A model generated the notes under the pieces. The model did not search any database. It was not told the DNA's origin and saw only the letters and a program-made list of their open reading frames with translations. The translations under genes were made by a program, and so were the position numbers. Of a stretch of DNA of 63,742 bases, positions 3,001 to 50,276 are shown one piece after another. Position 1 is the first letter of the stretch. Every line of letters begins with the position of its first letter. Source of the DNA: Amphiscolops sp. MND2022. Taxonomy: Eukaryota. The stretch spans positions 124,001 through 187,742 of the forward strand of contig CAXLNC010001113.1 of assembly GCA_964187785.1 (NCBI GenBank). The letters run 5' to 3'.

Positions 3001-3100
3001 TCGACAGTGTGGAAGAATATCGCTGCCTCTTCCGGGCTAACATCGTCCATTGGCATCTTGTTGCGCTCGGTCTGATAAAACCAGTTGCCTCGCGCATTGC
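1..3100 (-). CDS. Copy A polyprotein segment, missing from the ORF track: Gag end, CCCH (2658-2714), protease (2475-2498 DTG), 2OG dioxygenase (~1500-1950), MazG-like (~760-1190), degenerate MazG repeat
   Basis: My manual translation of the minus strand is stop-free from ~3100 to base 1 (CIRFFRGNCTRGEACQYGH; LLDTGANA; HKDYRNHEEYLNYTINFG; EHRV; RFSVTLF; EEVREIEEA..AELVD; KHGDNMRK; GKLIKPYDY). Confidence 0.88.
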
Positions 3101-6074: not shown

Positions 6075-6331
6075 TAACTTGTGACAACGAGATTCTGGCT
6101 ATGTGCTCACAACGATTGTTCCTATGATGTACCACTATCCTCGATATCCAGGCGTCACGCTCCTGCACTTCCTCGATTGGAAGTCTAAGCCCACATGGCT
6201 TGAGGAGGTGACAGTTCGTCATGCAAATGGATTCAAGTCAAGGACAGAACCTCTCCTGCACCTGACTCTGCAACAAGCTCTACAGATTGCCCGAACCCCA
6301 AGGGGCTTGCAAAGAGAGAGGCCCATTGACA
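6075..6331 (-). repeat. 5' terminal/LTR-like leader of copy A
   Basis: Begins TGTCAATG and shares blocks (TGGGGTTCGGG, CAGGTG, TCAAGCCATGTGGGCT, GGTACA) with the B and C leaders; the LTR 3' boundary cannot be defined. Confidence 0.6.
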
Positions 6332-7547
6332 GGGTTTGTAAACCAGTTTGCAGGCCATATGTGAATTGGCCCCTTTCTTGGATAATGGAGTGGGGCCATT
6401 GTTGAATACAGTTGAGTAGGAGCGAAACGCAAATTTGGTGCCCAGCATGGTGGGCTTGGCTTTTTAAATCATAGTGTTGCGTTCGGGCCAATCTTGTGGC
6501 CGTAGAGCTTTGCAATGATAATATTTTGCTTGGGGCTGGGACAAAAGCCCATCAACACCCTGCTCACATGAAGAACATGTCTTTGCCGAAAGAAATGCCA
6601 TCCGGACACAAATCTATACAGCTTCACCACGTGAAGTGTACGCTCTCAGGAATCTATGCGTTTACAGGTTTGTATGTCTAGCAGATTAAGTGGGCATAAA
6701 GGCAGCAGGCATTACATGACCAAACTTTGAGTGTATAGATTTGCGCCGGGGTGAAATGGGCCACCAGCAAGAAATTGGGTGGCAGATGTCCACCATAGGC
6801 CTGGAAAAAGTTGTCGAGGAGGCCAGCAATTTATTCCAAAACATGTTCTTTCTGTGGTGGTGGTGGTGGCGCGGTGGTGGTGTGTGCCTTTTGCTTCCTT
6901 GCGCCATTGCATCTCGGAGTTTACAGCTAAAGGAGCGAGCATTAGGGTGCGAAAATCAGCGCGCCTCATGTGGTCATCCTTGCAAAAAGTACAGATGAGA
7001 CGCCCAATTCCCTGAGAAAATCCTTTCCATGGAGACCTCGAGGACGAATAATCCGTCCAGAGATAGGAGAACTAACTCTGAGGGAATTATTATCGCAATC
7101 ATGTTGTGTCAGAGTGCAAACTATGAATACACAGAACAGTGCAATTTCGTGTAATCCGTTTGTAGGTTCTCCTATATTGCCACTCATGCAAAGTAATCCT
7201 AGAGCATTGCCTATAACATTGGTCATTCTCGTTGGGCTTGCCACCACTTGGCACTGATACCCTGCTTTATGTTTCATTCTACAGCTCTGCAAGTACGGCC
7301 CACGATTTCAAGAGAGGACTCCATTGCATTTACGGACACGGACCCTGGTTGGAACCGGATCAATGCCAGCGTGTCTGTGTCCCTACACCATGTGTTATGG
7401 CTGTTAACAGATGTACTTGCAGTGAAGAGACAGTGGCCCTCAAGTGCTTAACTCGTTTGGATGGGGCGGTGGCTGCCCAACCGCATCCTCATCGCACCAT
7501 GAAAGGCTTGGGAGGCACATGCATCATGATGGTATTGATGACATCGC

Positions 7548-7585
7548 TGATGATGATGATGATGATGATGATCATGATCATGATC

Positions 7586-7623
<38 letters not shown>
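7548..7623. repeat. (GAT)n microsatellite
   Basis: Direct inspection. Confidence 0.95.
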
Positions 7624-7626
<3 letters not shown>

Positions 7627-8029
7627 CACCACTGTGAGTGCGAAGCGCAAGGGTTGGAACTTGCGTTGCTCCTGCCGCAAGGTTACGAATCCTCAAGTGC
7701 AAACTGCACAATCTCAAATCCGCGCCCCGCCAATTCCGATTAACGGTTGACCACTAGACCTTGGGTGGTGGGCCCTACACAACTGCCGGGACTGTCGTGC
7801 AGTTCCTCGATGCAGCGCAGCAGCAATGCTGCCTTTTGCAAACCCCATGACCACATGGGCAAACACAGAAGCAGACACAGACCGCACAACACCCAGTGCG
7901 CAACGCCATGACTATACCTCAACACCAAATCCGCACGAGCATCTTTGTACAGCGGGAGACCACGTGGAGGTGGCGGGGCTCAACTGCCCTCCTTCCCTTA
8001 GAGCAATAGACAGGAAGAAAGATTGAATC

Positions 8030-8037
8030 AGATAGAC

Positions 8038-8092
<55 letters not shown>
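8030..8092. repeat. (ATAG)n microsatellite
   Basis: Direct inspection. Confidence 0.95.
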
Positions 8093-8338
8093 GGGAACAG
8101 CCGTAGGAGCCTGAGAAGGCTCCGGCTGCAGTTCGGGNNNNNNNNNNNNNNNNNNNNNNNNNNNNNNNNNNNNNNNNNNNNNNNNNNNNNNNNNNNNNNN
8201 NNNNNNNNNNNNNNNNNNNNNNNNNNNNNNNNNNNNNNNNNNNNNNNNNNNNNNNNNNNNNNNNNNNNNNNNNNNNNNNNNNNNNNNNNNNNNNNNNNNN
8301 NNNNNNNNNNNNNNNNNNNNNNNNNNNNNNNNNNNNNG

Positions 8339-8750
8339 CGAGGGATCGCCTCTGACAACAAGACAAAGGACAATCCCCACACCACCATCATGGAGATGCA
8401 AGCCCCGAACACCTCAACCTGCTTGTAGCCATAGCTATAGTCAAGGTCAGGGATCTTCTCTGAGAAGGACAGGGCCAAGATGGAGACAGCAAAGCCACCA
8501 ACATCTGAGAGCATGTGCGCCGCATCAGCCATGATGGCGAGCGAATTCGCGATCATGCCGCCGATGAGCTCAACGAGCATGAAGAACAATGCACAGTAGA
8601 CTGCAAAGCGAAGCTTGCGTTTGTCTTTGGCGTGCATGTCTTCCGGTGTGCCCTCGTCGGAACTCGAGTCGCAATGGCCATGACCGCTCTCCTCTTTATG
8701 GCCGTGCTCGTGATCATGGGAATGGCCATGTGTGCTCCCATGCCCGTTAC
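8339..8750 (-). CDS. Exon of a cation diffusion facilitator (SLC30/ZnT/MTP-like zinc transporter): His-rich N-terminal part plus TM1-3
   Basis: VELIGGMIANSLAIMADAAHMLSDVGGFAVS..YSYGYKQVEVFGA matches the CDF signature (SLAxxADAxHxLxD; YGYxRxE-like). The frame extends upstream as GNGHGSTHGHSHDHEHGH to a TAAG|G acceptor-like site at 8751; the downstream end abuts an N-gap. Confidence 0.85.
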
Positions 8751-8974: not shown

Positions 8975-9489
8975 CTTAGAGGCCCAGCAGCGATACTTTT
9001 CACATCGCGCGATACTTGTAGCCATAGTCCTGCACTACTCTTTCGTGTCTATTTTTATTGGGTATCGCACAATAATTGCGTGATGTGTTGCAAAATGGGG
9101 TATCTTGGAAGGGGGGGAAAGACCCCCACCCCCAAGATTTCAGCCTTACTAAGAAAACGGCCCGTTTTACTAAGGGTCAATTTCGTCCTTACTGAGGACC
9201 GAAAACGGCCTTACTACGGACATTTTTGTGGTAAAATACACAGGGAGGGGTCTTGTAGTAAAGCGGCCCGGGGCCCTTAGTAAAGTCCAGATGCTGACTC
9301 TTGTCTTGGGGGTGGGGGTCTTTTCCCTTCTTCCAAGTATCGCTCGGATGTGCCTATGTGAAACTAAGTGCCGGGGGGGGGGGGGGTCGCACCATTCTGC
9401 GGGAGTGCTGAGCTCCCTGAGAAGGTATCGTGCGATATGGGATATCGCAGCGATAGGTTCACAATATCGCGCGATATGGTGCCACTAAG
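8975..9489. repeat. Dispersed GATATCGC-rich repeat with imperfect terminal inverted repeats (CTTAGAGGC..GCCACTAAG), interrupted by a MITE
   Basis: With 9105-9336 removed, its flanks align with 36603-36848. Confidence 0.6.
9105..9336. mobile_element. 232-bp MITE with ~33-bp TIRs and 5-bp TSD GTATC
   Basis: TTGGAAGGGGGGGAAAGACCCCCACCCCCAAGA / TCTTGGGGGTGGGGGTCTTTTCCCTTCTTCCAA; GTATC at 9100-9104 and 9337-9341. Confidence 0.85.
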
Positions 9490-10411: not shown

Positions 10412-13400
10412 ATGGCAGAAGGGTCTGGTCACCTTCCAAATCCCGCAATGGGCAGAGACCTCGTGGCTGGCCATATTCACAAAGACCGTTATGGTCGCAG
10501 CCCGGCACCAGCATCGAGCCATCGCCCTGTAGGGAGAAAAAGAGTCCAAGCATCAGCAGATAGATCTCCTAAGCGGGTAGAACCTCCAGAATTGCCCAGG
10601 TTGAGAGCCCTAGAGGCACAAGCAGCAGCAATCCCTATCTCTAGTTCCGCGGCATCCTCCACCTCTCCCAGAAGCGGATCTTCTCGTGTCAATCCATACC
10701 CAATTGGGGAGGCTACCGAGAGCTCACCCTTGAGATTGTGCCCTCTGTGGCTACCCAAGCTACCCAATCTTGGGAACAGGGAGGATCATTGGATTTGACC
10801 CCGATAAGGAACGAGACTAGCCCTACCACTCCTTCCAATAAAACCATACAGGTTATGAGCCCAAACCTGGGTCAGGGATTGGCATCAGGTTCGACTCAGG
10901 TTGAAGAGGGAGAGATAGAGATGGATACCGCAATGGCCAGAGCTATTCTTCAGTCATGGTCGGAGACAAGGGCTGAAGATGGAACAGTGCAGAGAACATA
11001 CACTCAGTGTGCTCGTGAATGGCCTCTGTCAGAAACGGATTGAAGCTGCACTAAATGTTCTGAAGCGTGCTTGTGAGTATCTCCATGAAGGCATGATGCA
11101 GATGGGAAAGACAGTTGAACAGAAGGCCAATATTCCCAGTGTGGAGGCCGCTGTCAGAGAACTTGCTCATCACACTCAAGAGGTCCGTAATGGAGTGCAA
11201 CGAACAGTGACTCGCCAGACTGAGTTCTCCAACAGGCTGGACAGCATGACAGAGCACAATCAGGAAGCTCGTGGTCGTATGGAGGCATTGTCAGCCCAGG
11301 GTGATCAAGGAGGACGAGAACACATGGCCCTCGCTGTGGAGTATAGGCACTCAATAGACGAGACTCAACGAAAGGTGATTCAGTTGGGGAGCCTTATGGA
11401 ACATTCCCAAGTGGACACTCAGAGACTCGACAAGGGTCTGACTGATCTACGAGAAAATGTCTTCAATAATAGTGTGGCTATTGATCACCTAAAGGAGGAC
11501 ACGCAGCGCGAAGTAGCGAAGCTGAGTACCCTGAGTGGTCAAGCAACAGACATGTCAGTCTATCAACGGCATGCTGCCAGTCACGATCAAGCGCTTACTC
11601 AGTGCCGTACTCAGCTGACAACTCAGGCGCAGCGACTCGATGAAAGTGAACAACACCTTCGGCGTCTCCAACAGGAAGTGGCAGGCTTGACGGGTGAGCC
11701 GACTCCTCGAGTGGAGCAGGGCATCCCGAATCGAGATCCAGAGTTGGCCATCCGCCTGTCACAGCTGGAGGAAGGATTGAAGACTCAGCAAAGGGCGATG
11801 AAGCAGCTCAAAAGGGACAATGCTGAAGACGCCAAGGAGGTGAAGCAGTACCTAGACCAGGTACATGACCTTCTCACTACGACCCTCGAGGCAGTTGGCT
11901 CTACAACCTCCGAGCGGGCTACAGGAGGGATGACGAGGTTGTCCAAGGTGGCCAAAAGAGGAGATTTTAGAGTTGACGTGGAAGACAGTGACTTCTGCAA
12001 GGTGGGAGAGATTGTCCTTATTGGGGGTCAGGAGGCGAGAACAGTCATGGGTAAGAGTAGCCTTATCTTCAAAGTGCCACTGGATGGGGAATATCCCGAA
12101 GGAACGACTGTGAGAACCCTGCGGGAGAATGAATTTCTTCAGCTGGACGGTGAGAATGTGTATGTCTATGCGCAGGATTCAGAGGGACAGAGTCATATGG
12201 TGTGTGGTGTGGACTTGATGCATCGAGCACCCCCTGAGTGGGCAGAAGAAAGGGATGATGTCCAGGACCAAGTCTATTCAGATGACCTGGATCAACGGGT
12301 CCAGAGGGCCGTAGACGCTAGAATGGCGACTCCGAGGCCAGTTGTCTCGGGAGCAGGAGGACCGATGGTACCACCATGGACAGCATCCCATGCCCATGAA
12401 TGGAGTGCCTCGAATGGCCAGACAAAAATTCCTGTGTTGCCTTCTTTTGGAAAGAAGGAGGAAGGTGAGCCAGCGCAGGAACAAGGAGCATCTTATCAAG
12501 GCTGTGTCAAGCAAGAGGAGGATGTTAAGTTCGAGTCCCTGGATGACTACTTCTGCAGAGGAATGGACTCATCAGGACCAGCTTCATGGGATAAAATCCT
12601 TCGAGAAATGGAGCAGAATTCCCTTGAAGACGTGGGCACCATGAATTATCGAGAAGGAGTACGAGAAGAGAAATGGGGAATGTTGGACTTGAAGAGTATA
12701 CAGTTCCCAAAGGTGACCGCTCAATCGGTCAAAAGGGCGACCTTACTGCAGTACTTTGAGGTGGACTTTATCCGAGCTATGGGTATTATCAGCCCTGCAG
12801 CGGCCACCTATGCCAAAGCAGTGATTGCTGGTGTCCACAGAGATCTTCCTGTCTATCGCAAGCGAGATATGAGCACGACTGTCCGCGACTGGACCGGGAA
12901 GATGGTTGAAGAACTGTGGCATACACGCGCTGAAGCAGCGGTGAACTTAGCTTTACAGACAGCAGGGGTATCAGCAGAATCCTTGGAGATGGCGCGAATG
13001 CTAAGGCATGACCCACCAGTGAGGTTGATATTGATGACGGCTTATCATCGGCTGCTGCCCTATCAGTCTAGAGAAGAGGAAGAATTGCAGCAATATGTGA
13101 GGGAACCCCAGGTGGGCGATCAAGGAGCAGTGTCTACTTTTCAGAAGCTTCAGGCATGGAAGAGTGCTGGTCGTCGCTTAAGGCAGATGGGAGGTATGCT
13201 GCCCGGTATTCCTGCCTTGATGACTGCCTTTGACAAGATTTTAGCGGCCTTCAACATTCACAATCAGAGAGGGAATTGGTTCTACCAGACGGAGAGGAAC
13301 CTTCTTCCCATGGTGGACGCGACTCCAGGCCAAGCTGCATTCTTCTTCCACACCGTCGAGGTCAACTTGAACCAGGTCACGACAATGGTGAGCTATCTCC

Positions 13401-13658
13401 CACCTTCTGCTGCGAAAATCCATGCTGTGGATGCAAAGCCCAAGGCAAAGCCTAAGCCAAGGGCAAAGGCTAATAGCTCAGGGGGGGGGAACATCTGCTC
13501 CCACGAGCCCACCGCCTTCCTCTCCAGTGAAGACGGAAGGTCCGATTCCAAAACCTAATGCCCAGGTGGCCGAAAAGGGAGGCTCACCCGGAAAAGGTAA
13601 GAGCAAGGGAGCGGGATCAAGCACTGATAGACCGCCAGTGAACAAGAAGGGCCAACAG
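10412..13658 (+). CDS. Gag-like protein with Ser/Pro-rich N-terminus, long coiled coil (~11100-11900) and conserved core; frameshifts near 10735, 11030 and 13485
   Basis: ORFs 10412..10798, 10738..11043 and 10979..13558 together match the single copy C ORF; position upstream of the zinc finger and protease. Confidence 0.75.
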
Positions 13659-13715
13659 TGCATTCGGTTCTACCGAGGAACTTGCTCACGAGGTGACCAA
13701 TGTCAGTATGGACAT
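13659..13715 (+). other. CCCH zinc finger (C-x7-C-x5-C-x3-H) at the nucleocapsid position
   Basis: CIRFYRGTCSRGDQCQYGH, conserved in all three copies. Confidence 0.85.
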
Positions 13716-13869
13716 ATTCTTGGGACAGATGGAAAGCCCTTGAAGATCGCTCCGGAATTGCTGGAAAGGTATGACCGGCATTCAGCAGCGAGACGGGAGG
13801 GCAAGAAGCCAGAGACGACCGTGACGGCACAGATGCTTATGCTGAACGCCATTGAGCAAGCCGACTCTT

Positions 13870-14190
13870 GTTGCTTCTGCCTGCTGGATACTGGCGCGAA
13901 TGCCTTGGTACTTCCTCGTAAGGGAGAGATGTCTGGTACTGAAGCTCATTGCACTGTCCCGGGTGGCACCATGGTTCCCGGAACAGTTGTCCAGACACTC
14001 CGGTATGGGGAGGATGACTATCACGTTGTGGCTATTGAGGGTGCGTCTCCACTGATGCCACTATCATGGCTGATCTTGTTGGCAGGATGGTCCTACATGC
14101 CAGTGGTGAAGGATGGGAAAATGGAGGTGACGATCGCATCCCCGAGGGGACTGTCTGTGACGCTTGTCGAGCGTTCAAAGATGCATTATA
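13870..14190 (+). CDS. Retropepsin-like aspartic protease domain
   Basis: CLLDTGANALV, with the catalytic DTG starting at 13887. Confidence 0.88.
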
Positions 14191-14399
14191 TCGACAAGGC
14201 CACCTTCTTCAATGTCCTTCAGGACGCTTGGAAGCGTTGTAAGGCCTCGGATGGCATGGACTATGACCAGCTCAAGAGAGCCCTGTCAATGGAGACGCCC
14301 CATGTGGCAAGTGCAGTGAAGATGGAGCGACCCTCCTCTATCCGTTTCTTGGACATGAACATGAGCCGCAAGGGCTATATGAGGAGGATTGTGGATCTC

Positions 14400-14870
14400 C
14401 AAAGAACAATCGAGTCTATGACTTGGCCAAGTCAGAACAATAGGCCAGGACATGGCCTCTTCTTGGGAGCACCAATAGGGGATATGAGAAAGGATGTGTT
14501 TCCAAGAAGACCTTTGACGCGCAGTATACGCAGATCTTGCGGAGGGTACGTGCGCTGGCCAGATGTTGCCAAAAGACAATCCAGTATATGGGCGTATATC
14601 TGACAAAGTTGGAGTCTGGTCAAGGACTTAATCAGCACAGGGACTTCCGCAACCACGAGAAGTATCTCAACTACACCATCAACTTCGGTCACTATACGGG
14701 TGGACACTTAGAGGTGCTTCGTGACGATGATTGGGAGTCCTGTGCGGCACCGTTGATCTGGGTTGAGTTCACGGCGGACATCATCAAGCATCGGGTAAGA
14801 GAGGTGACTTCAGGTGTGCGATATTCAGTGACCCTGTTTACTCCAAACCACCTGGAGAGGCTGTCCGATG
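14400..14870 (+). CDS. 2OG-Fe(II) dioxygenase domain (TET/JBP-like motif pattern)
   Basis: HRDFRN (14636), FGHYTGGHLEV, KHRV (His at 14789), RYSVTLF (14819); all conserved in copies A and C. Confidence 0.82.
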
Positions 14871-15169
14871 ATGAGGATGAATCTTGAATCGTTTGGTTTC
14901 CCAGTGGACCAGTATGCTGAAAGGAAGACCACCAGTGTCTCTGCCGTGAAAGGCCCCACCGTTGAAGAACTTGACACTTCCGGTGAGGTGGAGATTCCCT
15001 CGACAGCGAGGATTGAGGAGATCCTAGAGAACTCCGAAGAAGCGCTCACTGTCCAAGCGGTGGAGAAGCAAGTCAGAGCTCTATCAGATCCATTGGACTC
15101 CCTGAGTGGTCAGGTGCCACGACCAAGCGCATCTGAGAATCGATCTTCGCGGCTGACTTTGGAGACATG

Positions 15170-15620
15170 TGCCTTGATGACACGGGACTTCAATACCGCG
15201 ATGGGTCTGCCGAAGGGCGAACTTCCTCAGTGCGTGGGTCAAGACAGGGGTTCCGTATATGGACAAATGCTGCGTGAAGAAGTTCAAGAAGTGGAAGAGG
15301 CCGTAGCACGAGGCATTCTTCATGAAGTGCTGGCCGAGTCCGTTGATGTCCTTTACCTTGTGTTCAACTTGCTGCAGGAGTGCGGCCTTGAGAGAGCTGT
15401 TGATCCAGCCTTCTCGCTGAAGCACGAAGACAACATGAAGAAGCAGCATGAGACAGTGACGCACCTGGCTTGTACCAGGAACGCATATGCTCAGTCTACT
15501 GGGAAGTCTGAAAAGGAGTTGGCGTTCACTGTCTCCAGAACTGAAGGAGGTAAGTGGCTCTTGTACTCCCAGGGCAAGCTGATCAAGCCTCATGACTATG
15601 TCTCGAGTGACTTTGACTCC
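15170..15620 (+). CDS. All-alpha MazG/DR2231-like NTP pyrophosphatase (dUTPase-like) domain
   Basis: EEVQE-x15-ESVDVLY (ExxE..ExxD), KHEDNMKK, GKLIKPHDY. Confidence 0.78.
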
Positions 15621-15799
15621 GTTGTTAGGATGCTCGCAGATGAGGAGTCCGTGAATGGACAAGAGAATGCGCAGAAGGCTCACTCATCAGGACCTCACAC
15701 CACTCAGTATACTTTCGCAAGTGTGGGTGTCCAAGTGGCCGCTGCCTCCATTGACTCCTCGCAGCGCACCTCAGGTGGTGGACAAAATCACCATGGATG

Positions 15800-16260
15800 G
15801 CAACCAGCATTGATGACTTCTTTCATGTGGTTAGCCAACGTCACTGGTGAGTTCATCTACCAAATGGGTGAAGACATCACTACAGTCCCCAAGCGGGCCA
15901 GGCCACGGTTGGTGGATGACCCTTTGGGAATGATGGAACAGGCACTTGTTGATTTGCGAGTCGCATGGGGTATGCATGATAGCTCAGCCATGTTGAGACA
16001 TCTCACTGTGTTGACCTACTTTGCGGTCCAGATGACTACTAGTCTCCATCTACACCCTTACCTTTCATCGACTTTCCTGTGGATCCACGAGTGGCAAATG
16101 GGGAAGATCTATGAGGACTTTGCTCCAGCAGAGAGCGCCTGGGAGATGATGCAGAATCTTACTATGAAAGAGATCCGAAATGGCTATGTCCTTGTGAACA
16201 GCGATTCCAGGGTCTTGGGTGACGACATTCTGGAGGAGAAAGCAGATGTGGTGTTGACCA
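15800..16260 (+). CDS. Degenerate second MazG-like repeat lacking the acidic metal ligands
   Basis: EQALVDLRVA / LTYFAV / FLWIHEWQMGK / GYVLVNSDSRVLG parallel EEVQEVEEA / VLYLVF / FSLKHEDNMKK / GKWLLYSQGKLIK. Confidence 0.5.
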
Positions 16261-16403
16261 TACCTGTTGAGAATCTGCTCATGTTGGTCCCCTACAAGAC
16301 TCATCTGCCGTTTGTGGGTATGACAAGTATTGGACAGTCGCCCTTAGTGGCAGAGGACATGGCTCACAAGGCCAACTCCACGGAGTTGGTGTCCCCTTCT
16401 CTA

Positions 16404-16445
16404 TGACAAGTACGGGCCCTCCTTAGGTCTCCTGAGGAGGTGCCC
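16404..16445 (+). promoter_or_regulatory. Putative stop-codon readthrough signal: TGA-CAAGTA, 7-nt spacer, hairpin 16414-16445
   Basis: Upstream and downstream ORFs are in the same frame; an identical arrangement is present in copy C. Confidence 0.8.
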
Positions 16446-16454
16446 TTTGATGCA

Positions 16455-16583
16455 TGCGCAGTGTGCTTTCGCCCATGTGCCCTCTGTGGCCCGAAGCATT
16501 GCATGCTGTGTTACCGTCGAATTCACCCATGGTGTGCCACGTCCCCACATGACGATGCACATCCCATTGTGTGCAGATTTTGC
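16455..16583 (+). other. PHD-like zinc finger with an extra CxxC, N-terminal to the integrase
   Basis: CAVC..CALC..CMLC-x4-H-x2-C-x12-CRFC. Confidence 0.7.
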
Positions 16584-16899
16584 GCCTCTTCCCCTGGTGG
16601 ACGTACTCATTTTCAGGTGCACAATGTTCAGATGAGACAGCGCTTTGTGATCTCTGGGTGCGCTACAGCCATGCCTGAGGTGCTTGAAGAACCCGCCATC
16701 ACGGTGCACTCCTCCGACAAGGACATTGCCAGTGGAGATGAGCATCCCTCTGTGGAAGAGCTACCTGCTGCACGGTGCAATCCAGTTCCCTTAGTGGACC
16801 GAATGGTGTGCGTCCAGGCACATAGGTCAAGCCAGACTGCACCTTTTATAGTTCCGGATATTCACCGTGTTCTTGAAGGAACAGGCATGTTGGAGTGCC

Positions 16900-17750
16900 C
16901 AGACCACAAATTGGACCATGGTGTTCCGGATCCTAAATGTGACTATTGTAAAAGAGCTCTGGGTCCCTTATACAGACATTCGGCCCTGAAGGAGTCAAGG
17001 GAGATTCCGATCCTCACATTTGATTTCTCAGGACCGCACCCCTCCACAGTGCATCCTGCCAAGCAATTGATGGTTATTGTTTGGTGCCTGAGGGAGGTGC
17101 GACTGATTTGGGCAATGGGCGTAGAAAATAGAGATGATCCCCATGTGGTCGCCGGATTACAGGTTGCTCTTGATGATTTGTCCAGCTTAACCGGAGGTTG
17201 CCGAGCACCTGTCCTGCGTCTTCATTCCGACAAAGCAAAGGAGTTCCTTGCGACAAGTGTGCGAAAATTGTTGCGTTCTCATGGCACACGCCAGACCACC
17301 AATTCCGGGTACGATCCTGCCGCAAATGGCATAGCTGAGCGATGGGTAGGTATTATCAAGGTCCGTGCAACGGCACTGCTGGCAGAGCATCGACTTCCTC
17401 CGGACTATTGGACATATGCCTGCAAATGGGTTGCCTATGTGCACAACCATCGTGTTCTGAGCATTCAGCTTAATGCCAGTTATCCACTTTTTGGAGATGT
17501 GGTGGTCGTACATCGTTTCTTGAAGAAACCACCGAGCTTTGAGGATCGTGGGATCACTGGAGTTTGTTTAGGACGCAATCCGTTAGTTTCTGGAGGGGTG
17601 ACAGTGGGAACGGTCTCGGATGGCCTTTTTAATGTGATTGTCACTGCCAAGGTCCGAAAATTGGGGGAGCGTCGTCCTCAGCGATGGAAGCTTCATGTGC
17701 ATCCTACGGAGCCTCGAGCGGCCGCCTATGTGCGCAATGATGGGGAGATC
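16900..17750 (+). CDS. Integrase (HHCC plus DDE core)
   Basis: DHKLDHGVPDPKCDYC; TFDFSGP; LHSDKAKEF; NGIAERWVGIIK. Confidence 0.92.
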
Positions 17751-19181
17751 CGATGGAACCTGAACGACTTAGACGTGGCCACTGTGGAAGAACTGGAACC
17801 AGAAGGTGCCGTTGAAGTGCAAAATCTCCGTTCTCTCGGAATGGGCTGGGCATGGTATGTGAATGACCTCAGCAAATATCTTCCGGATGCGGAGACTCTA
17901 GCCGCAATGGCCCCCACAGATGACGATGTCGTGGGTGTGGATCATGATGTCCCATTGAGTGAGATTGCTCTGGAACCTGAGAGGGTGGATGTGCCCGTTG
18001 AGATCGACCCTTATACAACTCCACTACCTTTTCCTCATGCCGCGCCTGGCCCAGCTGAATATGAGACACTTGCCGGTATGGCACCAGATTTGCTTCCTCG
18101 TTCACAAGATGTGGATCTGGTCGTGGCGGCAATGGATATTCCTCTAGCACCAGCTCTACGTGCTCACTTGAAGTCATGGACGCGCGAAGACCTGAATGTA
18201 CGAGTGTTTCAAGGTGTTCGTCGTGGAGGACCTCCTTCTCACCGCGTCTGGTGTCGTGAGACATATGAGATGAATACTGGCAAGCTCATTGCGCGGGAGT
18301 TCTACAATCCTGATCAATCTTCTTTGGTTCGTTTGCCCACACCGGCACTTCCAGATTGTACACCGATGAATGCCGACCGTCGATCGATTCGCAGTATCTT
18401 CTGGTATTCTGAGACTGATGTCTTGCCCTCCCACCTCTCCCGACTTGTTCCTGGCCGTGTTCTGGCTTCTGCGGCTCCTGCGGGCGGACCTCGCCTACCC
18501 ACCTCGGTCCGGGGGGAGGGTGGTGAGCCGCATATGGCATATGATGCTCAGAGCCAGCAACGTCAGGACTTGACGCCAGATTCCGGGGGAGCCTCAGCGA
18601 AAGGGCAAGAGTCTCCTACCGAAGCTGGAAGCGGGGGAGCTGTGGGCCTCGACCAAGAAGAAGTTCTCTCACAAGATAGCTTTGAGACTGCCATTTCTCA
18701 GGGCTACCGAACAGAGGATGAAGAGGGAAATTGGGATTCCTCCGTTTCCTTGGTGCACCTCGGGTGGTTGAACGTAGAGCTGAAGTCTGACGACTGGGTC
18801 AAGGTAATGGATCAGCCACCGGTCCGAATCATGAAAATCACAATGGATGAGGATAAGAACCGCAAGAACACGAAGAAATTTGTGGTTGAGGAGAATGACC
18901 AAGGAACCTCGGTAAAGACCTATTGTGTTACTGGTCTCGATACGAGTAAGCAACTGGAACTGGTGGAGGCATCGTTTCAGTTGAGATGCAGGATCTTCGA
19001 ATTCAATGCGGTGTCCTTTGCGGCCATTCCTTTGGAACTGGTGCCCCTAGAGGTCGACTATGTTGATGCGTTGTCAAAGCAAGACGTACCGGACTATTTT
19101 GCTGGGCCGTCAATGGCTAAGACACTGACACAAGAGACCCGGGTGGTATTTGGACCGGAAAAGGGGGAGTAGAAAGCAGCA

Positions 19182-21101
19182 ATGCTGGCTGAACTACAAT
19201 CTTTTGCCAAACTGGATGTGTATGAGGCAGTTTCCCGTGCGGACGTAGGCCACCAAGAAATACTTCCTGGCAGGCTGGTTCTTGTGGTGAAACCCAATCC
19301 AGAGGGCGTGAAAGGGAAGAAGAAGGCAAGAATTGTGGTGTGTGGGAATTTCCAGACTATTCATCAGGATGAAATGACCTCTTCAAAGACTCCTTCGTAT
19401 CCTATGCTGAGAATGCTCTTGTCCTTAGCTTCATATCAAGGTTGGCCGATAGAGACGTGGGACGTATCAACAGCTTTCTTGTACGCCAGGTTGTATGGGG
19501 ATAGGGATACGGACCTTGATGGTCAATACATCTATATGAGGCCGCCAAAGGTCATTGAGAAGCTTGGTCTGTTACCGGAAGGGACGATATGGAAGTTGAA
19601 GAAGGCGCTTTATGGATTACGTACTTCACCGCTTGCTTGGGAAGTTGAGAGAGACAATACCCTTGCACAGCTCCAATGGGAAGTTGAAGAACGATGGTAT
19701 GGTTTGGTTCCTGCAAAAGGCAATCCCTGTCTATGGGCGATCGTTGAGCTTGATGCGGGAAATCATTGTGTGCCCGGTGTGGCCAGGCCATCTGCACAGA
19801 CTCTGAGAGCCGAAGAACCAGGGCAGCCGTCAATGGCCAAGAAGTATCGCACAATAGGAATTCAGACAGAAGGTCAGGAGAAACCTGTGAGGTTGCTAGG
19901 AGGACTGGTCATGTATGTGGATGACCTGTTGCTGGCAATGCCGGAATGGCACTTAAGACCTGTGGTGGATCTATTGTTAAAGAAGTATGTTATGAAGCAG
20001 TCGGGTGTTCTCCCTAGTGGGCCACAGAAACAGGATGTGCAGATTGGTTTCCTTGGATGTCGAATAACCAGAGACCAGTATGGTATCATTTTCTGTGACC
20101 AAGAAAAGTACATCCAACACTGCATGCATGAGAATGGGTTTGTTGGTGCAACGCAACAAGTGACGTTGAAGCCCTTTCACCGACCACCCGAAGTGGATGA
20201 GCGACTGCCTGAGGAAGTCTTGTCAGAAGAAACCAAAAGGAAGCATGTTGCAGAGTGCCAGAAGTACATAGGCCAACTGATGTGGCTGGCCACAAGGACA
20301 AGGCCAGACATCTCAGCTGTCCTAGGCATCTGCGCTTCCTTCATATTAAAGACTCCTCAGAAAGTGGCCAATCATTTAGTTGATTTGTGGAGATATGTGT
20401 GGACAACTCGTAGGTATGCAATGTCTACCCTTTCTCCCGCTATGGGCCCATCAAGTAGTTCTCCTCTTCCCGCAATGGGCTCGACAACAGGAGACCAACA
20501 TGGAAGCGATGTGGGTGAGAACATACGTCAAGATGGTTGCCTTGATGGCAGTGAAAGATTATCAATTGACAGACCGGAGTTTCACATCCATGCTTATACC
20601 GATGCCAGTTTTGCTACGTCAGGAGGGAGGAGTCGTTCGGGATTTCTTGTCTGTCTGGTTCAACCTGAAACGGGCGAGTATTCTGTTTTACAATGGTCCT
20701 CGAGGAGACAAACAATCACAGCGTATTCAGCGCCTGAGGCTGAGATAGTGGCAATGTCTGAGGGCATCATGACATCTATCTTGACGTATGATGCAGCAGA
20801 GTTTCTGGGTGTGTGTGTGGGTATAACTCCATTCTTGAAGATCCCAATGAAGACAGACAGTGACACTGGCCTGAAACAGTTAAAGAATCAGTCCATTGTC
20901 GTCAGGAATCGACCTCTCACCAAGAATTACAGCTATTTGCATGATGTGTGCTATGGGACACTGCTCCATCCCCCGTGCATTGAACCTTCATTTCTGCCGG
21001 GAAAGGTACAGAAGGCTGACGGAATGACCAAGATTTTGGGACGGAACCTTCAAATGGAGTTCATGGCCATGTTAGGTATGCGCTCCCCTTCTTACCTCTA
21101 A
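19182..21101 (+). CDS. Copia-type reverse transcriptase plus RNase H; preceded by a copy-specific TAG at 19170
   Basis: KARIVVCGNFQ, WDVSTAFLY, LKKALYGLRTSP, YVDD; RNase H AYTDASFA, WSSRRQ, SAPEAEIVAM, TDS, KADGMTK. Confidence 0.95.
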   Translation: MLAELQSFAKLDVYEAVSRADVGHQEILPGRLVLVVKPNPEGVKGKKKARIVVCGNFQTIHQDEMTSSKTPSYPMLRMLLSLASYQGWPIETWDVSTAFLYARLYGDRDTDLDGQYIYMRPPKVIEKLGLLPEGTIWKLKKALYGLRTSPLAWEVERDNTLAQLQWEVEERWYGLVPAKGNPCLWAIVELDAGNHCVPGVARPSAQTLRAEEPGQPSMAKKYRTIGIQTEGQEKPVRLLGGLVMYVDDLLLAMPEWHLRPVVDLLLKKYVMKQSGVLPSGPQKQDVQIGFLGCRITRDQYGIIFCDQEKYIQHCMHENGFVGATQQVTLKPFHRPPEVDERLPEEVLSEETKRKHVAECQKYIGQLMWLATRTRPDISAVLGICASFILKTPQKVANHLVDLWRYVWTTRRYAMSTLSPAMGPSSSSPLPAMGSTTGDQHGSDVGENIRQDGCLDGSERLSIDRPEFHIHAYTDASFATSGGRSRSGFLVCLVQPETGEYSVLQWSSRRQTITAYSAPEAEIVAMSEGIMTSILTYDAAEFLGVCVGITPFLKIPMKTDSDTGLKQLKNQSIVVRNRPLTKNYSYLHDVCYGTLLHPPCIEPSFLPGKVQKADGMTKILGRNLQMEFMAMLGMRSPSYL

Positions 21102-21279
21102 TGGTGTGTCTCGTCAATTACACGTAATGTGTCGCATGTTGTGCTAAGCTGTGTTTCCTTGGTGGACTGTGTTTGAGAGAATGACTGATGAGATTGAGGC
21201 TGTTCCCGTTATGGGCTAATATTTGTGTGTCTGTCTGGAGCCGTTTACAGGAAAGAGGATCAAGGGTGGCGGTGCGATT

Positions 21280-24200
21280 ATGTCCCACAGGGGGGAGGGA
21301 GCCATCTATCAGGAGGGCCAAGACCGGCCTTCCCAACCTGTTGCCTCTAGTCGGCAAAGGACAAGCACAGCTGGTGCAACTGAGATGGCCCCGAGTGGCA
21401 TTTCTACAGCATCATCCACGCAACCGTCACCACCTCTTCCAACCAGTGACCTACCTAAGGAAGTGCCGCATATGGCAGAAGGAAGGTCACAAATGACCGT
21501 AAAACTCGATCAAGCAGTAGATGCGCGACAATTAGCTGCGCATGATGTGGTACCACGGCTGAGAATACAGCTTGAGGAGATCTTTGAGCCTTCCCCTGTG
21601 GACCAGGTCGACTTATCTCAGACTGTCAATAGTCGAGTGATTATCATTCATGGCCCCACTGGAACAGGAAAATCGACAGTGATCCCATGGGAAGCTATGA
21701 GATGGCTGGAAGAACACTGTTCCCGCAGAGGACGCAAAGCTGGTAGGGTGATTTGTTCACAGCAGAGGAGGAAAGTTACCATCTCCTTGGCCCAGGAGGT
21801 CCGACGTAGACATGGCGAAGTTGGAGTCTCCACAGTGGGCTATCATGTGTCAAGAGACCGCCAAATCACGGATGACACTAGATTGGTTTATCTCACTGAG
21901 GCTATTGGTGTCTTCTCTCTGCTGAATAACAGATCGCCCGGTGTGGCCAATCCGCTAGCAATTGTGATAGCAGATGAAATCCATGAAAGGACCATGTACA
22001 CACAGATGATCATCGGCTTGGCTCGAGATCAGATGTCTCGTAGCACCGGAATGGTCTTGATCCTCATGTCTGCGACAGTTGATATGGAGGAATTGAGAGA
22101 TGCCCTTCCAGGAGCTCGGGAGATTGAAATTGGGAAGCATGAGTTCGCAGTGCACCGCTATTACCTCGAGAGGCCTGTGACTCAGTCTACCAATATTCTT
22201 GAGCAGACAGCACGACTAGTGGTGACCCTGCACCATCAGCATGGCACAACAGATCTGGTGGAGGGTGTCCCGAGCGGCCAATTCTGCGACCATTTCTTGG
22301 TATTTTGTCCAGGCAAGCCTCAGATGAGGGTTCTGGCTTCTATCTTGATAAGATGGCAGGAATTGGGATATACTCGGGGACTGGAAATTGTCCAAATGTC
22401 GAGTGGAGAGGACCCTCGGACCTGGGAGTACTTTGACAAAGCAGTGACAGACTATCCCGTAATGGGCCGTGATCGACCATACTACATGAGTCCTCATGGC
22501 ATCCAGAAAATGAAGCCAAACGCGGGCAAGAATGGTCCACAATATCCTCCCTATGCGGACAAGGACATCGTGACGCAATTATCCCATGTGGTCAAACGGA
22601 AAAGGAAGGTGGGGCTGACGACCAATGTCAACCAGACCGGAGCCACTCTGACTTCGGTTGCTGTGGTGATCTCGACGACAGGCGTCAGGACATGCTCCCC
22701 CAACTTGAGATCCAAAGAGGAGGTCAATTGCATCCAGACGGTGTCCGTGAGTGACCTGATTCAACAGGGAGGAAGGGCTGGACGTGTATGTCCCGGAGAA
22801 CATTATGTGATGGCTTCAGAATCCCAGGTGGTCGGACAGTTTCGAGGAGCAAGTGCACCAGAGCTGCTCAATGCCGATGTGGCACCGCTCATTAGCATTT
22901 GCAAGAGGATCAACATAGATCCACTCAACTTTCCGATCTTGAACATGCCGGATGAGAAGGTGTTGGGAGCCACCACACAGCGAATGAGAATGCTGGAGTT
23001 GCTAGACGATGACGGCAATCTCACCCATCTGGGACAATCACGACTGGTGTTGGACTATACCCCAGAGTGGGCCCGCTTTATTGCCAAGGCATTGGAGTAT
23101 GGAGTGTCGGAGGGAGCTATCCGAATTGCGGCGGTGCTATGCCGAGAAGAAGATCTATACACCCCACATGTTCGTGAATCTCTTTCCCATGTGGACGGTG
23201 ATGTGATGACAATCCTCCATTTGGTATGGTTGGCTGAAGGAATCTTGAAGAGGTTTCACATCACACGAGTCCAGGCACTATCCAACCATGATGCCGCAAA
23301 GGCAACCCTTGAGCGGGCAGGCCTACAAGTCAAAGGGGTGATGCAAGTCATGCAGAACATTGAGCAGCTGCGTGAGTCAATTGCAAACTCAGATCTCCCG
23401 CGTGGGCCCTTGAGGAGATCCTCGGACAAATGCTATGCGACCCTGCTGGTGCATGCTTTGTGGGAGGGGTTCTACATGAATGTGATGATCAAGAGCTTCA
23501 CTGGACAGTACGTGAGCCCTACCTATGGAGGCGAGTGGAGCATCAGCAAGACCACACTGCAATATGCACCCTTGGTGGTCCTCCCGTTGAAGAAGACGAT
23601 CATAGATGGGAACCCTTTCCTCCAGTGGATCACCCCATTGCCAGTTGAGTGGCTTGTCGAACGAGATTGGTGGATCCAGACACATTGGGAGGATAATGAC
23701 TGTCGCATGGTTTACCGCAATCTGGTCGCATGCCCGATATTGCGAGACATGGTGAGCACGGCAAGGCTGTACCCTGGTGGTCGAATCAAGATCATTGAGC
23801 TGAAGGCTATCCCACCAGTGGAAGAAAAGCCGCCAATGGCCGTGACCATCGATAATTGCGCAGTCATGTTGAATAGGTACCTCCTCACAGCCCGAGAGCT
23901 GGAAATCATCTTCGACTTGGTCTCGAGTGACTACTTGGTAACTGCATATGTGTCAGGCTCATATGTCTTGAACAACACGGTCAAGAATGAGGTCACAATG
24001 CAGGTTCTCAAGTGGACAGTGAGCACTTCCAAGTCCAAGAAGCCGTACAAACTGAACACCATTGACAAGCCATCTGTCCAGACACTTGGCGCTTACTCTT
24101 TCATTCCCCGTGAGGACTATCATCAGGAAGCCTGGTTGAGTGGTGGTAGAGAAGTGCAGCTTAAGTCCAATGCGGAAGACCTGGCCTTGTCGCGGATGTG

Positions 24201-27200: not shown

Positions 27201-27463
27201 TAATCCACTCTTCATAGCGGCAGGCCGGAAGATTGTGGACTCCCTTTTCACAGGAGCAAGCTCGAAGAAGGAATCAGACTTGGGTGACAGAATGGAGTCT
27301 GCCTTCAATCTCAGCTTCTGGGAAAAGGAGGGAGCTTTCGACTGGTCTTGGCTCGGTTTGGATCTCGTGAATGAGCGCATGACTGAGGAGCTGTTGGTGT
27401 CCCTTGAGTGGAGTTGTTATCGAGAGTCGGAGATCCAGTTGATACAGACGTTCCTGGACATCT
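21280..27463 (+). CDS. Intronless DEAH/RHA (HrpA-like) SF2 helicase ORF2, >2000 aa, C-terminus truncated
   Basis: GPTGTGKST (21652), DEIHER (21973), MSAT, FCPGK, TTNVNQTG, QQGGRAGR (22762), HA2-like LTHLGQ..LDYTPEWARFI; C2H2-like CAWC..H..H (~24400); low-complexity linker ~25600-26450. Confidence 0.9.
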
Positions 27464-27817
27464 ATAAAGTCCACCTCAAAGTACTGCAGTAAGGTCGCCC
27501 TTTTGACCGATTGAGCGGTCACCTTTGGGAACTGTATTTCTTCAAGTCCAACATTCCCCATTTCTCTTCTCGTACTCCCTCTCGATAATTCATGGTACCC
27601 ACGTCTTCAAGGGAGTTCTGCTCCATTTCTCGAAGGATTTTATCCCATGAAGCTGGTCCTGATGAGTCCATTCCTCTGCAGAAGTAGTCATCCAGGGACT
27701 CGAACTTAACATCCTCCTCTTGCTTGACACAGCCTTGATAAGATGCTCCTTGTTCCTGCGTTGGCTCACCTTCCTCCTTCTTTCCAAAAGAAGGCAACAC
27801 AGGAACTTTTGTCTGGC
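27464..27817 (-). mobile_element. Inverted near-identical duplicate of copy B gag segment 12417-12771
   Basis: The reverse complement matches 12417-12771 with only a few differences. Confidence 0.9.
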
Positions 27818-28795: not shown

Positions 28796-29314
28796 GGAGT
28801 GTAACCAAGGGGTAGTTTATTAAGGGGAGGTTGTAACAAGAGCTTGTACGTTCCCTTAGCGGTTCCTATTCCTGCCCCCACTTGCGCCCCAACCCCACTC
28901 TTTTTCCTCTTTAGCTCCAGCCCATCCCACCGCCATACACCTCCCCTTACCCAAGGCCCCCGATAGGAACACACAAGCAAATGTGCTAGCTACCCCGGGC
29001 GCTAGCTACCCCCTAGTTAGTGCCTGAGCTTTCCCCTTCCCAAAGAGTCTTTGAACGATTTTTAGAAATAACTTTATGATGACATCAGAAGAAACCTCAA
29101 ATGGCTGTTCAAAACCTATACTGAAGGGTCTAGGTTAGAGTTTAGTGTTGACCTTAAATGGGTTTTCTACAAGGAGTAACCTTGATTCAGGCTTTGTTTG
29201 ATACATTCAGGTGGACATGCTGGTATGGCTGATTCGTGTTTTCATTTTGCTTTTAAGTTGGTTACTTTTTTCTGGAGATGGGTGGGAAGTAGAGGCTTGG
29301 GGTCCCTGTGCTTT

Positions 29315-29610: not shown

Positions 29611-29749
29611 TTGCTCCATGTGTCAATTTTATTCTCTGTCTGGCTTTCTTTGTATATTTGGAGACTATACCACAGCCCCTCCCCCTCCAATCCCCTCTTC
29701 CTGAAGGCACAAGCCCCCAAAAGTTAATGTTTCTGCCGTGGTAAGCAAA

Positions 29750-50273: not shown

Positions 50274-50276
50274 TCA
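50235..50276 (-). promoter_or_regulatory. Putative readthrough signal of copy C: TGA-CAACCA, 7-nt spacer, hairpin 50266-50235
   Basis: TCT CTG TGA CAA CCA CGG GCC CTC CTC AGG CCT TCT GAG GAG GTG CCC. Confidence 0.8.

Follow-up and report, generated by a model that had tools for sequence, protein, structure and literature searches.

Retroelements rarely fix extra enzymes, and the cases described so far have each been informative about conflicts with the host. Betaretroviruses and non-primate lentiviruses encode a dUTPase inside the polyprotein, near the protease or pol, which is thought to keep unwanted pyrimidine nucleotides out of the cDNA. Orchid Ty3/gypsy elements carry an AlkB (ALKBH9-like) m6A demethylase domain (PMC9289625), and AlkB domains also occur in plant RNA viruses. 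In dinoflagellates, certain retrotransposons have captured a DNMT, a cytosine methyltransferase, probably as part of the conflict with silencing, although Symbiodinium copia elements are stated to lack a DNMT (PMC5890265). The same host group possesses divergent 2OG dioxygenases with HxD and H...R centres, the thymidine hydroxylases CryTJ1/AmpTJ1, found by iterated searches with the Tet_JBP profile. These enzymes prefer naked or single-stranded DNA, and their product, 5hmU, is abundant in dinoflagellates and marks and silences transposons (PMC11572971). In addition, phages that replace thymine (5hmU phages of the SPO1 type) pair a dUTP/dTTP pyrophosphatase, a base-modifying enzyme and a dNMP kinase.

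We show herein that a giant Ty1/copia-order retroelement of a probable dinoflagellate carries two strongly conserved extra enzymes, a 2OG/Fe(II) dioxygenase and a MazG/HisE-type NTP pyrophosphohydrolase, in its Gag-protease polyprotein. Like the retroviral dUTPase, the MazG-like domain is a nucleotide-pool enzyme by family and lies inside a retroelement polyprotein; however, it is by profile of the all-alpha MazG/HisE type and not a trimeric beta-barrel, no dUTPase profile hit was found in any ORF of the element, it would be made at Gag level rather than after a frameshift, and the element is of copia order in a protist host. Like the orchid and plant-virus AlkB domains, the dioxygenase is a captured 2OG/Fe(II) oxygenase, but it gives no AlkB-family profile match, and the element superfamily, position and host all differ. 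The dinoflagellate DNMT elements share the host group and the capture of an enzyme of nucleic-acid modification, while the enzymes and element classes differ. The 5hmU phages likewise place a base-modifying enzyme alongside a nucleotide pyrophosphatase or kinase; they nonetheless use folate-dependent hydroxymethylases acting on dUMP, encoded by separate genes, and no sequence relation to them was found.

Three diverged copies in the window

The window analysed is a stretch of 63,742 nucleotides (contig CAXLNC010001113.1, positions 124,001 to 187,742 of the forward strand, assembly GCA_964187785.1, Amphiscolops sp. MND2022). It holds three diverged copies of the element, designated A, B and C, with the following features.

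10412-16406 (+): copy A, first polyprotein gene (Gag-like, CCCH finger, protease, dioxygenase, MazG-like, C-terminal domain (CTD)); broken, with about five frameshifts and no premature stop
13659-13715 (+): copy A, CCCH zinc finger in a nucleocapsid-like position (weak Pfam zf-CCCH/Torus match)
13881-13898 (+): copy A, aspartic protease active-site motif (D-T-G), conserved in relatives
14316-14924 (+): copy A, 2OG/Fe(II) dioxygenase domain; the core lies in a different frame from its flanks, with the catalytic HxD, H and RxS residues present
15153-15647 (+): copy A, MazG/HisE-type all-alpha NTP pyrophosphohydrolase core, acidic metal ligands present
15738-16367 (+): copy A, conserved CTD without a family match
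16404-16406 (+): conserved in-frame TGA stop ending the first polyprotein of copy A
16414-16445 (+): stem-loop 7 nt downstream of the stop (readthrough-type signal)
16407-21101 (+): copy A, integrase-RT gene (Cys-rich region, rve, RVT_2), broken by one in-frame stop
21223-27492 (+): copy A, giant downstream ORF with a DEAD/DEAH helicase domain (Pfam DEAD), cut short at its 3' end
1-6074 (-): copy C, first polyprotein gene, cut by the window edge; two frame changes and one stop in the Gag part, uninterrupted from zinc finger to CTD
1431-2060 (-): copy C, dioxygenase domain, intact
756-1208 (-): copy C, MazG-like core, intact
36-653 (-): copy C, CTD
50274-56507 (-): copy B, first polyprotein gene, heavily broken (at least seven frame changes and more than ten stops), ending at the same conserved TGA (50274-50276)
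51789-52385 (-): copy B, dioxygenase domain remnant
50525-51652 (-): copy B, MazG-like and CTD region, degraded
41282-50273 (-): copy B, integrase-RT and truncated helicase ORF

The preliminary description had noticed a dioxygenase and an NTP pyrophosphatase as neighbours upstream of an in-frame stop in copy A, and this observation is confirmed. Both domains lie upstream of the stop, as does the aspartic protease, and integrase follows in the same frame. Nonetheless, copy A itself cannot make the protein as one chain. The uninterrupted version is found in copy C, which was used in place of copy A for modelling, and in relatives outside the window in which a single ORF of about 2000 codons holds Gag, zinc finger, protease, dioxygenase, MazG and CTD; copy A is homologous to intact relatives of 1982 and 2020 aa over their whole length. 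The integrase-RT gene is a single ORF of 1544-1560 codons in two relatives (L001 and L003), and the helicase ORF spans about 3340-3390 aa in relatives. In another relative (L006), an extra ORF of 336 codons between protease and dioxygenase has no family or PDB match. Chance is excluded, as the domains recur in the three window copies and in dozens of outside copies under purifying selection. The frame changes between Gag and protease are not programmed frameshifts, because their number and direction differ between copies and several relatives have one uninterrupted ORF; many outside contigs are low-coverage long-read assemblies, so their indels are not reliable either way.

Assignment to the Ty1/copia order rests on the domain order, with D-T-G protease, rve and RVT_2 on one strand in copy A and in relatives, and on the RVT_2-type reverse transcriptase (PF07727, E 8.3e-19, 68.6 bits, above the gathering score). 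No flanking direct repeats were found in the window, where all three copies lack at least one end. Rfam and tRNA scans of the window found nothing, and a PDB sequence search with the whole open stretch of copy C gave only a zinc-finger hit at E 0.9. The host is probably a dinoflagellate, on indirect evidence: the only named relatives are from Amphidinium carterae, and a neighbouring host gene is closest to Togula jolla.

Predicted enzymes, selection and the conserved stop

The copy A dioxygenase matches Pfam 2OG-FeII_Oxy_3 at E 2.6e-5, below the gathering score. An AlphaFold2 model of the copy C domain reached a pLDDT of 90.2, with a predicted double-stranded beta-helix fold and a Foldseek probability of 1.0 to many 2OG oxygenases; H114, D116, H165, R175 and S177 are invariant in 11 diverse members. 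The domain thus belongs to the 2OG/Fe(II) oxygenase superfamily, but it is not recognisably TET/JBP or AlkB. Among 18 members, no hit to Tet_JBP (PF12851) appeared at E up to 1, and none to the AlkB-type profile (2OG-FeII_Oxy_2). The only sequence-profile matches are to P4H/PiuC-like families: PF13640 in 9/18 members (best E 1.6e-5, 26.2 bits against a cut-off of 27), PF03171 in 4/18, the NCBIfam PiuC-type dioxygenase, and PiuC chains in the PDB (E 0.1), all below curated thresholds. The fold search cannot choose between AlkB, P4H, TET and other families: NgTET1 and CcTet gave TM 0.51-0.55, AlkB 0.47-0.54 and P4H 0.45-0.50, with AlkB and ALKBH proteins the most numerous top matches. Among viral predicted structures, one of the two highest TM-scores (0.61, by a small margin) belongs to a phage protein annotated as a JBP1/TET oxygenase domain, the other protein being unnamed; AlkB-like domains of RNA-virus polyproteins also appear. 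Scans of the JGI metagenomes and IMG/VR with the dioxygenase alignment confirmed no relative, tblastn of the dioxygenase against phage genomes gave no match, and a literature search on PiuC function yielded nothing.

The MazG-like core of copy A matches Pfam PRA-PH at E 5.9e-8 (33.5 bits against a gathering score of 21.3) and PHROG 671, nucleotide pyrophosphohydrolase, at E 8.4e-12 over the whole core; copy C matches Pfam PRA-PH/MazG and PHROG 671 (E 2.1e-7). The best phage matches are annotated MazG-like. The five acidic ligand columns, on two helices (EE..E and E..D), are invariant in 28/28 main-family sequences and align to the same residues of HisE 1yvw (E 0.011). The fold is supported by profiles only, as the AlphaFold2 model of MazG plus CTD was poor (pLDDT 39, core 57-70) and its Foldseek search had no significant hit; recurring matches to DR2231, a MazG-like dUTPase (E 0.4-1.3), are no more than a lead.

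Both enzymes are as constrained as protease, integrase and RT. At dS of 0.3-2 across lineages, dN/dS is 0.01-0.11 for the dioxygenase, 0.03-0.11 for MazG and 0.04-0.09 for the CTD, compared with 0.06-0.11 for protease, 0.02-0.08 for integrase/RT, and 0.25-0.34 for the linker of about 80 aa between the two enzymes.

The stop is a conserved feature, not a mutation. It is TGA followed by CA in six of six copies, and RNAalifold placed a stem of 14 pairs downstream, four with compensatory changes. In this stem 95% of cells are paired, against 50-61% in slid controls, and 1 of 500 shuffles reached the observed score. The arrangement resembles programmed readthrough in gammaretrovirus gag-pol and alphaviruses of the UGA-C type, with a leaky stop context, a spacer of about 8 nt and a conserved downstream stem with covariation. 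Most known copia elements use one ORF, splicing or a frameshift.

Lineages with and without an active MazG

The preliminary description proposed that the two enzymes may form one thymine/uracil-handling module, and held that independent occurrence across relatives would refute it. This condition is partly fulfilled: the dioxygenase occurs without an active MazG in three lineages, whereas MazG without the dioxygenase was not seen. In one lineage the dioxygenase residues are kept but all five MazG ligands are replaced in 5/5 sequences, all from one 90%-identity cluster. In a sister lineage (locus L008), the dioxygenase is followed by a CTD-like stretch, the stop, and then a thymidylate kinase fused to the integrase, with no room for MazG. 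The kinase matches PF02223 at E 9.1e-24 (84.6 bits against a cut-off of 27) and thymidylate kinase 2wwf at E 1.4e-24; TIGR00041 gives 74.4 bits, below its equivalog cut-off of 83.25. In the third, A. carterae transcripts show protease, dioxygenase and a Cys-rich region, with neither MazG nor the kinase in the parts seen. These lineages are known from low-coverage long-read contigs (about 2-4x) and partial transcripts, and a MazG elsewhere in the elements is not excluded.

Possible roles of the two enzymes

The module interpretation is only partly supported. Adjacency within the Gag-containing polyprotein upstream of a readthrough-type stop makes expression at Gag level, as the preliminary description suggested, the expected outcome, whereas packaging in the particle is inference; nothing shows that the dioxygenase acts on thymine or uracil. 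What our analysis establishes is that the two are adjacent, separately folding accessory domains (the MazG-like fold resting on profiles) of the first polyprotein of a giant copia-order family, of LTR type by its domain order and RT, of probable dinoflagellate hosts. The order is Gag-like protein, CCCH finger, protease, dioxygenase, linker, MazG-like domain, CTD, UGA-C with stem-loop, integrase-RT and a helicase ORF of about 3400 aa; catalytic residues are intact, purifying selection equals that on protease, integrase and RT, and the stop and stem-loop are conserved. The remainder is inferred, including readthrough itself and the activity of both enzymes, and we hold it with moderate confidence. 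In this view, most ribosomes stop at the UGA, so that both enzymes are made in step with Gag and enter the particle as parts of the Gag polyprotein. The MazG-like domain most likely shapes or cleans the deoxynucleotide supply for reverse transcription, by functional analogy (not homology) with retroviral dUTPase, and would remove dUTP or another non-canonical pyrimidine dNTP, which in a dinoflagellate could include 5-hydroxymethyl-dUTP. The thymidylate kinase of the sister lineage points to the same need for a controlled thymidine nucleotide supply. The dioxygenase would be the older, family-wide acquisition, working independently of MazG catalysis on a nucleic-acid base or a protein residue not yet identifiable. 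The two share a product and probably a compartment, but as relatives keep the dioxygenase without the pyrophosphatase they are not an obligate two-enzyme pathway, although constant adjacency and equal constraint in the two main subfamilies are also what a coupled pathway would show.

A coupled thymine/uracil/5hmU module, in which the dioxygenase hydroxylates thymine in cDNA or at the nucleotide level, or further oxidises 5hmU, while MazG or thymidylate kinase steers the T/U/5hmU pool, remains a tentative alternative. The particle would thereby set the modified-base content of its cDNA, to match host DNA or to escape 5hmU-based silencing. The probable dinoflagellate host, with its 5hmU made by 2OG dioxygenases, the conserved order and constraint, the 0.61 viral match, and the presence in two lineages of a nucleotide enzyme, one thymidylate-specific by family, speak for it; the thymidylate kinase swap and the probable host keep a pyrimidine-nucleotide theme plausible for the MazG part. 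On the contrary, no Tet_JBP match was found in 18 members, PDB profile hits are to PiuC-type hydroxylases only, the fold search does not prefer TET/JBP, and the dioxygenase persists with a ligand-less MazG and with none; moreover, if 5hmU silences transposons, writing it on its own cDNA would not obviously help the element. Also unlikely, but possible, is an AlkB-like repair or demethylation enzyme, unrelated to MazG, that removes m6A or alkylation damage from the element's RNA or cDNA, as proposed for the plant-virus and orchid domains. Numerous AlkB structural matches and the orchid precedent favour it, while the absence of an AlkB-family Pfam hit in 18 members and TM-scores of about 0.5, equal to those for P4H and TET, do not. 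A 2OG-binding Arg ten residues after the distal His, in an RxS motif, would be the prolyl-hydroxylase/IPNS arrangement rather than the AlkB one.

Similarly doubtful is a protein hydroxylase of the P4H/PiuC kind that modifies Gag, another element protein or a host factor, perhaps a ribosomal or translation factor as OGFOD1/Tpa1-type enzymes do, which could tune termination at the element's own UGA. The weak profile matches, a Pseudomonas P4H that hydroxylates EF-Tu among the top structural hits, and the position just upstream of the readthrough signal agree with it, but the structural search does not prefer P4H, and the link to readthrough is speculation with no direct evidence. That the domains are decaying passengers or annotation artefacts is very unlikely. 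Although copies A and B are broken and the dioxygenase Pfam score is below threshold, this idea is contradicted by the low dN/dS, the invariant catalytic residues, the uninterrupted ORFs of about 2000 codons in several copies, the confident dioxygenase model and the A. carterae transcripts.

We found no report of MazG or thymidylate kinase in retrotransposons in the searchable literature. An unlikely but not excluded extension is that the family carries its own small pathway for pyrimidine bases, a base dioxygenase related in function to the dinoflagellate 5hmU synthases plus either a MazG-type pyrophosphatase or a thymidylate kinase, and so decides whether its cDNA carries T, U, 5hmU or a further oxidised form. 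This would be a retroelement counterpart of phage DNA hypermodification, aimed at the 5hmU-based transposon silencing of dinoflagellates. The conserved UGA-C plus stem-loop is also a clean candidate for programmed readthrough in a copia-order element. A copia-order family keeps three kinds of extra enzyme under strong selection, a 2OG dioxygenase in all lineages, a MazG-type pyrophosphatase in some and a thymidylate kinase in another, in a probable host group whose DNA is rich in 5hmU and whose transposons are marked by it. Its lineages with active MazG, dead MazG, thymidylate kinase or neither offer natural comparisons, which make the question of what 5hmU and nucleotide-pool control mean for mobile DNA in dinoflagellates approachable with existing genome, modification and expression data.

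Retroelement copies and the two enzyme domains

An ORF listing, Pfam scans and a self-comparison showed that the window contains three diverged copies of one very large retroelement family. The copies and the associated features are as follows.

About 10.4-27.5 kb, + strand: copy A, coding region
About 41.3-56.5 kb, - strand: copy B
Window start to about 6.1 kb, - strand: copy C
13659-13715, + strand: CCCH zinc finger in the nucleocapsid position, copy A
14316-14924, + strand: dioxygenase domain, copy A
15153-15647, + strand: pyrophosphatase (MazG-like) core, copy A
15738-16367, + strand: C-terminal domain (CTD), copy A
36-653, - strand: CTD, copy C
21223-27492, + strand: long ORF with a helicase domain, copy A
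27464-27817: inverted fragment of the Gag-like gene, matching 12417-12695
7912-8637, - strand: host cation-efflux (CDF) transporter exon, with an N run at 8138-8337
About 7507-7659: trinucleotide (GAT/CAT-type) repeats
9105-9336 and 36371-36602: inverted repeat pair
62245-63460, 37164-37343, 39792-39947 and 29303-29663: microsatellite-like arrays

The gene order is that of Ty1/copia, with a D-T-G protease followed by an rve integrase and then an RVT_2 reverse transcriptase (RT). Downstream of RT, every lineage has a very long ORF with DEAD/DEAH and Helicase_C domains (21223-27492 in the window; from 17474 and 16476 to the locus end in the related contigs L001 and L003, respectively; 11770-13668 in L008, a contig of a sister lineage), which is about 3340-3390 aa in well-kept copies and has no family match in its remaining part. 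This is unusual cargo for a copia-order element, and makes the element well over 20 kb. The zinc finger is of the CCCH type rather than the CCHC knuckle usual in Gag proteins, and the Gag-like protein is very long (about 1100-1300 aa) and scores weakly against coiled-coil families only.

The copies are about 80% (A against B) or less (A against C) identical in DNA, and all three are damaged. In copy A, the first polyprotein gene has about five frameshifts and no premature stop, the integrase-RT gene has one in-frame stop, and the helicase ORF is cut short. At the point of this truncation lies the inverted fragment of the Gag-like gene, 279 nt of which are 98% complementary to copy A's own Gag region, far closer than any other pair of copies, suggesting a recent local inverted duplication or rearrangement. 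In copy B, the first gene has at least seven frame changes and more than ten stops. Copy C has two frame changes and one stop in its Gag part, but the stretch from the zinc finger through protease, dioxygenase and MazG to the CTD is uninterrupted up to the window edge. The inverted repeat pair (232 nt, 95% complementarity), one arm of which lies just upstream of copy A, may be another repeat family or a terminal-repeat remnant. The microsatellite-like arrays are long, consist of CA/CACGA-type units of 10 and 15 nt, CTCGCTCTTC-type units of 10 nt and CT-rich runs, and in several cases lie next to N runs.

The observation made in the preliminary description, that a dioxygenase and an NTP pyrophosphatase lie side by side, held up on examination. 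The dioxygenase domain of copy A matches Pfam 2OG-FeII_Oxy_3 at E 2.6e-5, just below the gathering score, and keeps HxD, the distal His and RxS. The pyrophosphatase core matches PRA-PH above the gathering score and MazG weakly, and also matches PHROG 671, nucleotide pyrophosphohydrolase, at E 8.4e-12 over its whole length. In addition, it matches the solved HisE 1yvw at E 0.011 over the two ligand-bearing helices, and its best phage matches are genes annotated as MazG-like. However, the dioxygenase core of copy A is out of frame with both flanks, a point missed in the preliminary description; the intact arrangement is found in copy C and in outside copies.

A word-based protein search found 17 close relatives (52-88% identity), all from one ENA assembly, while an exhaustive profile search found 526 proteins at E up to 1e-3, of which the best 150 are almost all fragments of the same family. 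Well-kept copies are present in contigs L001, L003 and L004, and nine predicted proteins, up to 2020 aa, hold the Gag-like protein, CCCH finger, protease, dioxygenase, MazG and CTD in one uninterrupted ORF. The differing frame changes in the window copies are therefore mutations (or, in low-coverage contigs, assembly errors), not programmed shifts.

The conserved stop and selection on the domains

The first polyprotein ends at the same place in both main subfamilies. The codon is TGA followed by CA in six of six copies, and integrase follows in the same frame in at least five of them. A 14-bp stem-loop begins seven nucleotides after the stop, and four of its pairs show compensatory changes between subfamilies; 95% of cells are paired, against 50-61% when the partner is slid, and one of 500 shuffles reaches the observed covariation score. 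By analogy with gammaretroviral and alphaviral readthrough, this is the anatomy of a programmed readthrough site. It follows by inference that protease, dioxygenase, MazG and CTD are made in step with Gag, and that integrase-RT is made at a small fraction of that level. The earlier argument for Gag-level production of both enzymes holds, and packaging is a reasonable inference from their being part of the Gag polyprotein.

Pairwise dN/dS was computed on single-frame stretches between copies whose dS is 0.3-2. While dS is partly saturated and the ratios are accordingly rough, the ranking is clear.

Table. Pairwise dN/dS by region
Dioxygenase: 0.01-0.11
MazG core: 0.03-0.11
CTD: 0.04-0.09
Dioxygenase-MazG linker: 0.25-0.34
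Protease: 0.06-0.11
Integrase and RT: 0.02-0.08

The five acidic ligand columns of MazG are invariant in 28 of 28 main-family sequences, and the iron and 2OG ligands of the dioxygenase are invariant in 11 members that are only 35-97% identical. The CTD, a domain of about 210 aa after MazG, is as constrained as the enzymes but matches no Pfam, NCBIfam or PHROG family; a weakly similar stretch follows the dioxygenase in the lineage that lacks MazG.

Affinities of the dioxygenase and its distribution among lineages

AlphaFold2 with an 18-sequence alignment gave a confident model of the dioxygenase (pLDDT 90.2, pTM 0.87). A Foldseek search of the PDB with this model returned AlkB, ALKBH5/6/7, NMAD-1, CcTet, NgTET1, bacterial P4H and ethylene-forming enzyme, all at E about 1e-6 and TM 0.45-0.55. 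Against viral models, it returned giant-virus and cyanophage 2OG oxygenases, RNA-virus polyprotein domains and a phage JBP1/TET-annotated protein, at TM 0.43-0.61. No family stands out. By sequence, the only matches are to P4H-like groups, all below curated thresholds: PF13640 in 9 of 18 members, PF03171 in 4 of 18, the NCBIfam PiuC-type dioxygenase at E 0.003, and PiuC chains in the PDB at E 0.1. There is no Tet_JBP or AlkB profile hit. The Arg that should bind 2OG lies ten residues after the distal His, in an RxS motif; by analogy with known enzymes, this would be the prolyl-hydroxylase/IPNS arrangement. The label "thymine dioxygenase" therefore has no direct support, and it is not excluded either. 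The dinoflagellate 5hmU-forming enzymes are themselves described as highly divergent TET/JBP homologues (PMC11572971).

Whether the two domains co-occur across the family, a test set beforehand in the preliminary description, was examined in more distant lineages found through the exhaustive search and a domain-only profile search. In lineage B (contig L005 and the P0051 sequence cluster), the order is Gag, protease, dioxygenase, a MazG-homologous stretch, integrase and RT; all five acidic MazG ligands are replaced in 5 of 5 sequences, while the dioxygenase centre is kept. In lineage C (contigs L008 and L006), the dioxygenase is followed after about 75 residues by a CTD-like stretch, leaving no room for MazG. 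An in-frame stop follows, and then one ORF holding a Cys-rich region, a thymidylate kinase and the integrase. The kinase (L008 5700-7712; also L006 8042-8467) is flanked by two Cys-rich regions and fused in front of the integrase just after the stop; it gives PF02223 E 9.1e-24, above the gathering score, and its best PDB match is thymidylate kinase 2wwf at E 1.4e-24. Lineage D comprises about a dozen Amphidinium carterae transcripts in EukProt, which show protease, dioxygenase and a Cys-rich region, with no MazG, CTD or kinase in the parts available. MazG without the dioxygenase was not seen. Lineages B and C come from contigs of about 2-4x coverage, the five lineage B sequences belong to one 90% cluster, and lineage D is known from partial transcripts. 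With these reservations, the dioxygenase is the common accessory domain and outlives MazG catalysis, and MazG and thymidylate kinase are alternative additions. The condition that would have refuted a coupled module, independent occurrence of the domains, is met in part.

Two further ORFs deserve mention. The very low-coverage contig L006 has an extra ORF of 336 codons (5226-6236) between protease and dioxygenase, with no family or PDB match. In L007 (Logan SRR21285602, a 973-bp contig), a 210-aa ORF with its own start and stop (319-951) is 46% identical to the element's dioxygenase over 110 residues. It ends right after the domain and may be a free-standing relative, although the contig is too short to tell.

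Host and possible roles of the enzymes

The only named relatives of the dioxygenase are from the dinoflagellate A. carterae. In addition, the cation-efflux gene next to copy A, identified by Pfam, has as its best named relative a protein of the dinoflagellate Togula jolla, at 63% identity. The host is therefore probably a dinoflagellate. In dinoflagellates, 5hmU replaces much of thymine; it is made after replication by 2OG dioxygenases that prefer naked or single-stranded DNA, it is enriched on transposons, and inhibiting its formation activates them (PMC11572971).

The anatomy of the element, the intact catalytic centres, purifying selection and the readthrough-type signal were established directly by the analysis, whereas readthrough itself, the location of the enzymes and their activities are inferred. 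In the reading we favor, which appears about as likely as not, the first polyprotein is the abundant product and brings both enzymes into the particle. The MazG-like domain would remove an unwanted (deoxy)nucleoside triphosphate near the site of reverse transcription, as retroviral dUTPase does; in this host, the unwanted nucleotide could be dUTP or 5-hydroxymethyl-dUTP. The thymidylate kinase of lineage C would serve the same end by raising the dTTP supply, and the dioxygenase would have a separate task. The coupled thymine/5hmU module proposed in the preliminary description is only partly supported and, as a whole, appears doubtful. An AlkB-like repair or demethylation role, and a protein-hydroxylase role possibly touching translation termination, are each somewhat less likely still, and non-function is very improbable.

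The element works like other retroelements that fixed accessory enzymes, namely those with retroviral dUTPase, the orchid gypsy elements with AlkB (PMC9289625) and the dinoflagellate DNMT retrotransposons (PMC5890265), but the enzymes themselves differ. The pyrophosphatase belongs to the MazG/HisE superfamily, not to dUTPases, and the dioxygenase belongs to the 2OG oxygenase superfamily but to no family that could be positively identified. Full-text searches, in a literature collection that is incomplete, found no report of MazG or thymidylate kinase in retrotransposons. The swap of one nucleotide enzyme for a thymidylate-specific one is the best evidence that control of the thymidine nucleotide supply matters to these elements.
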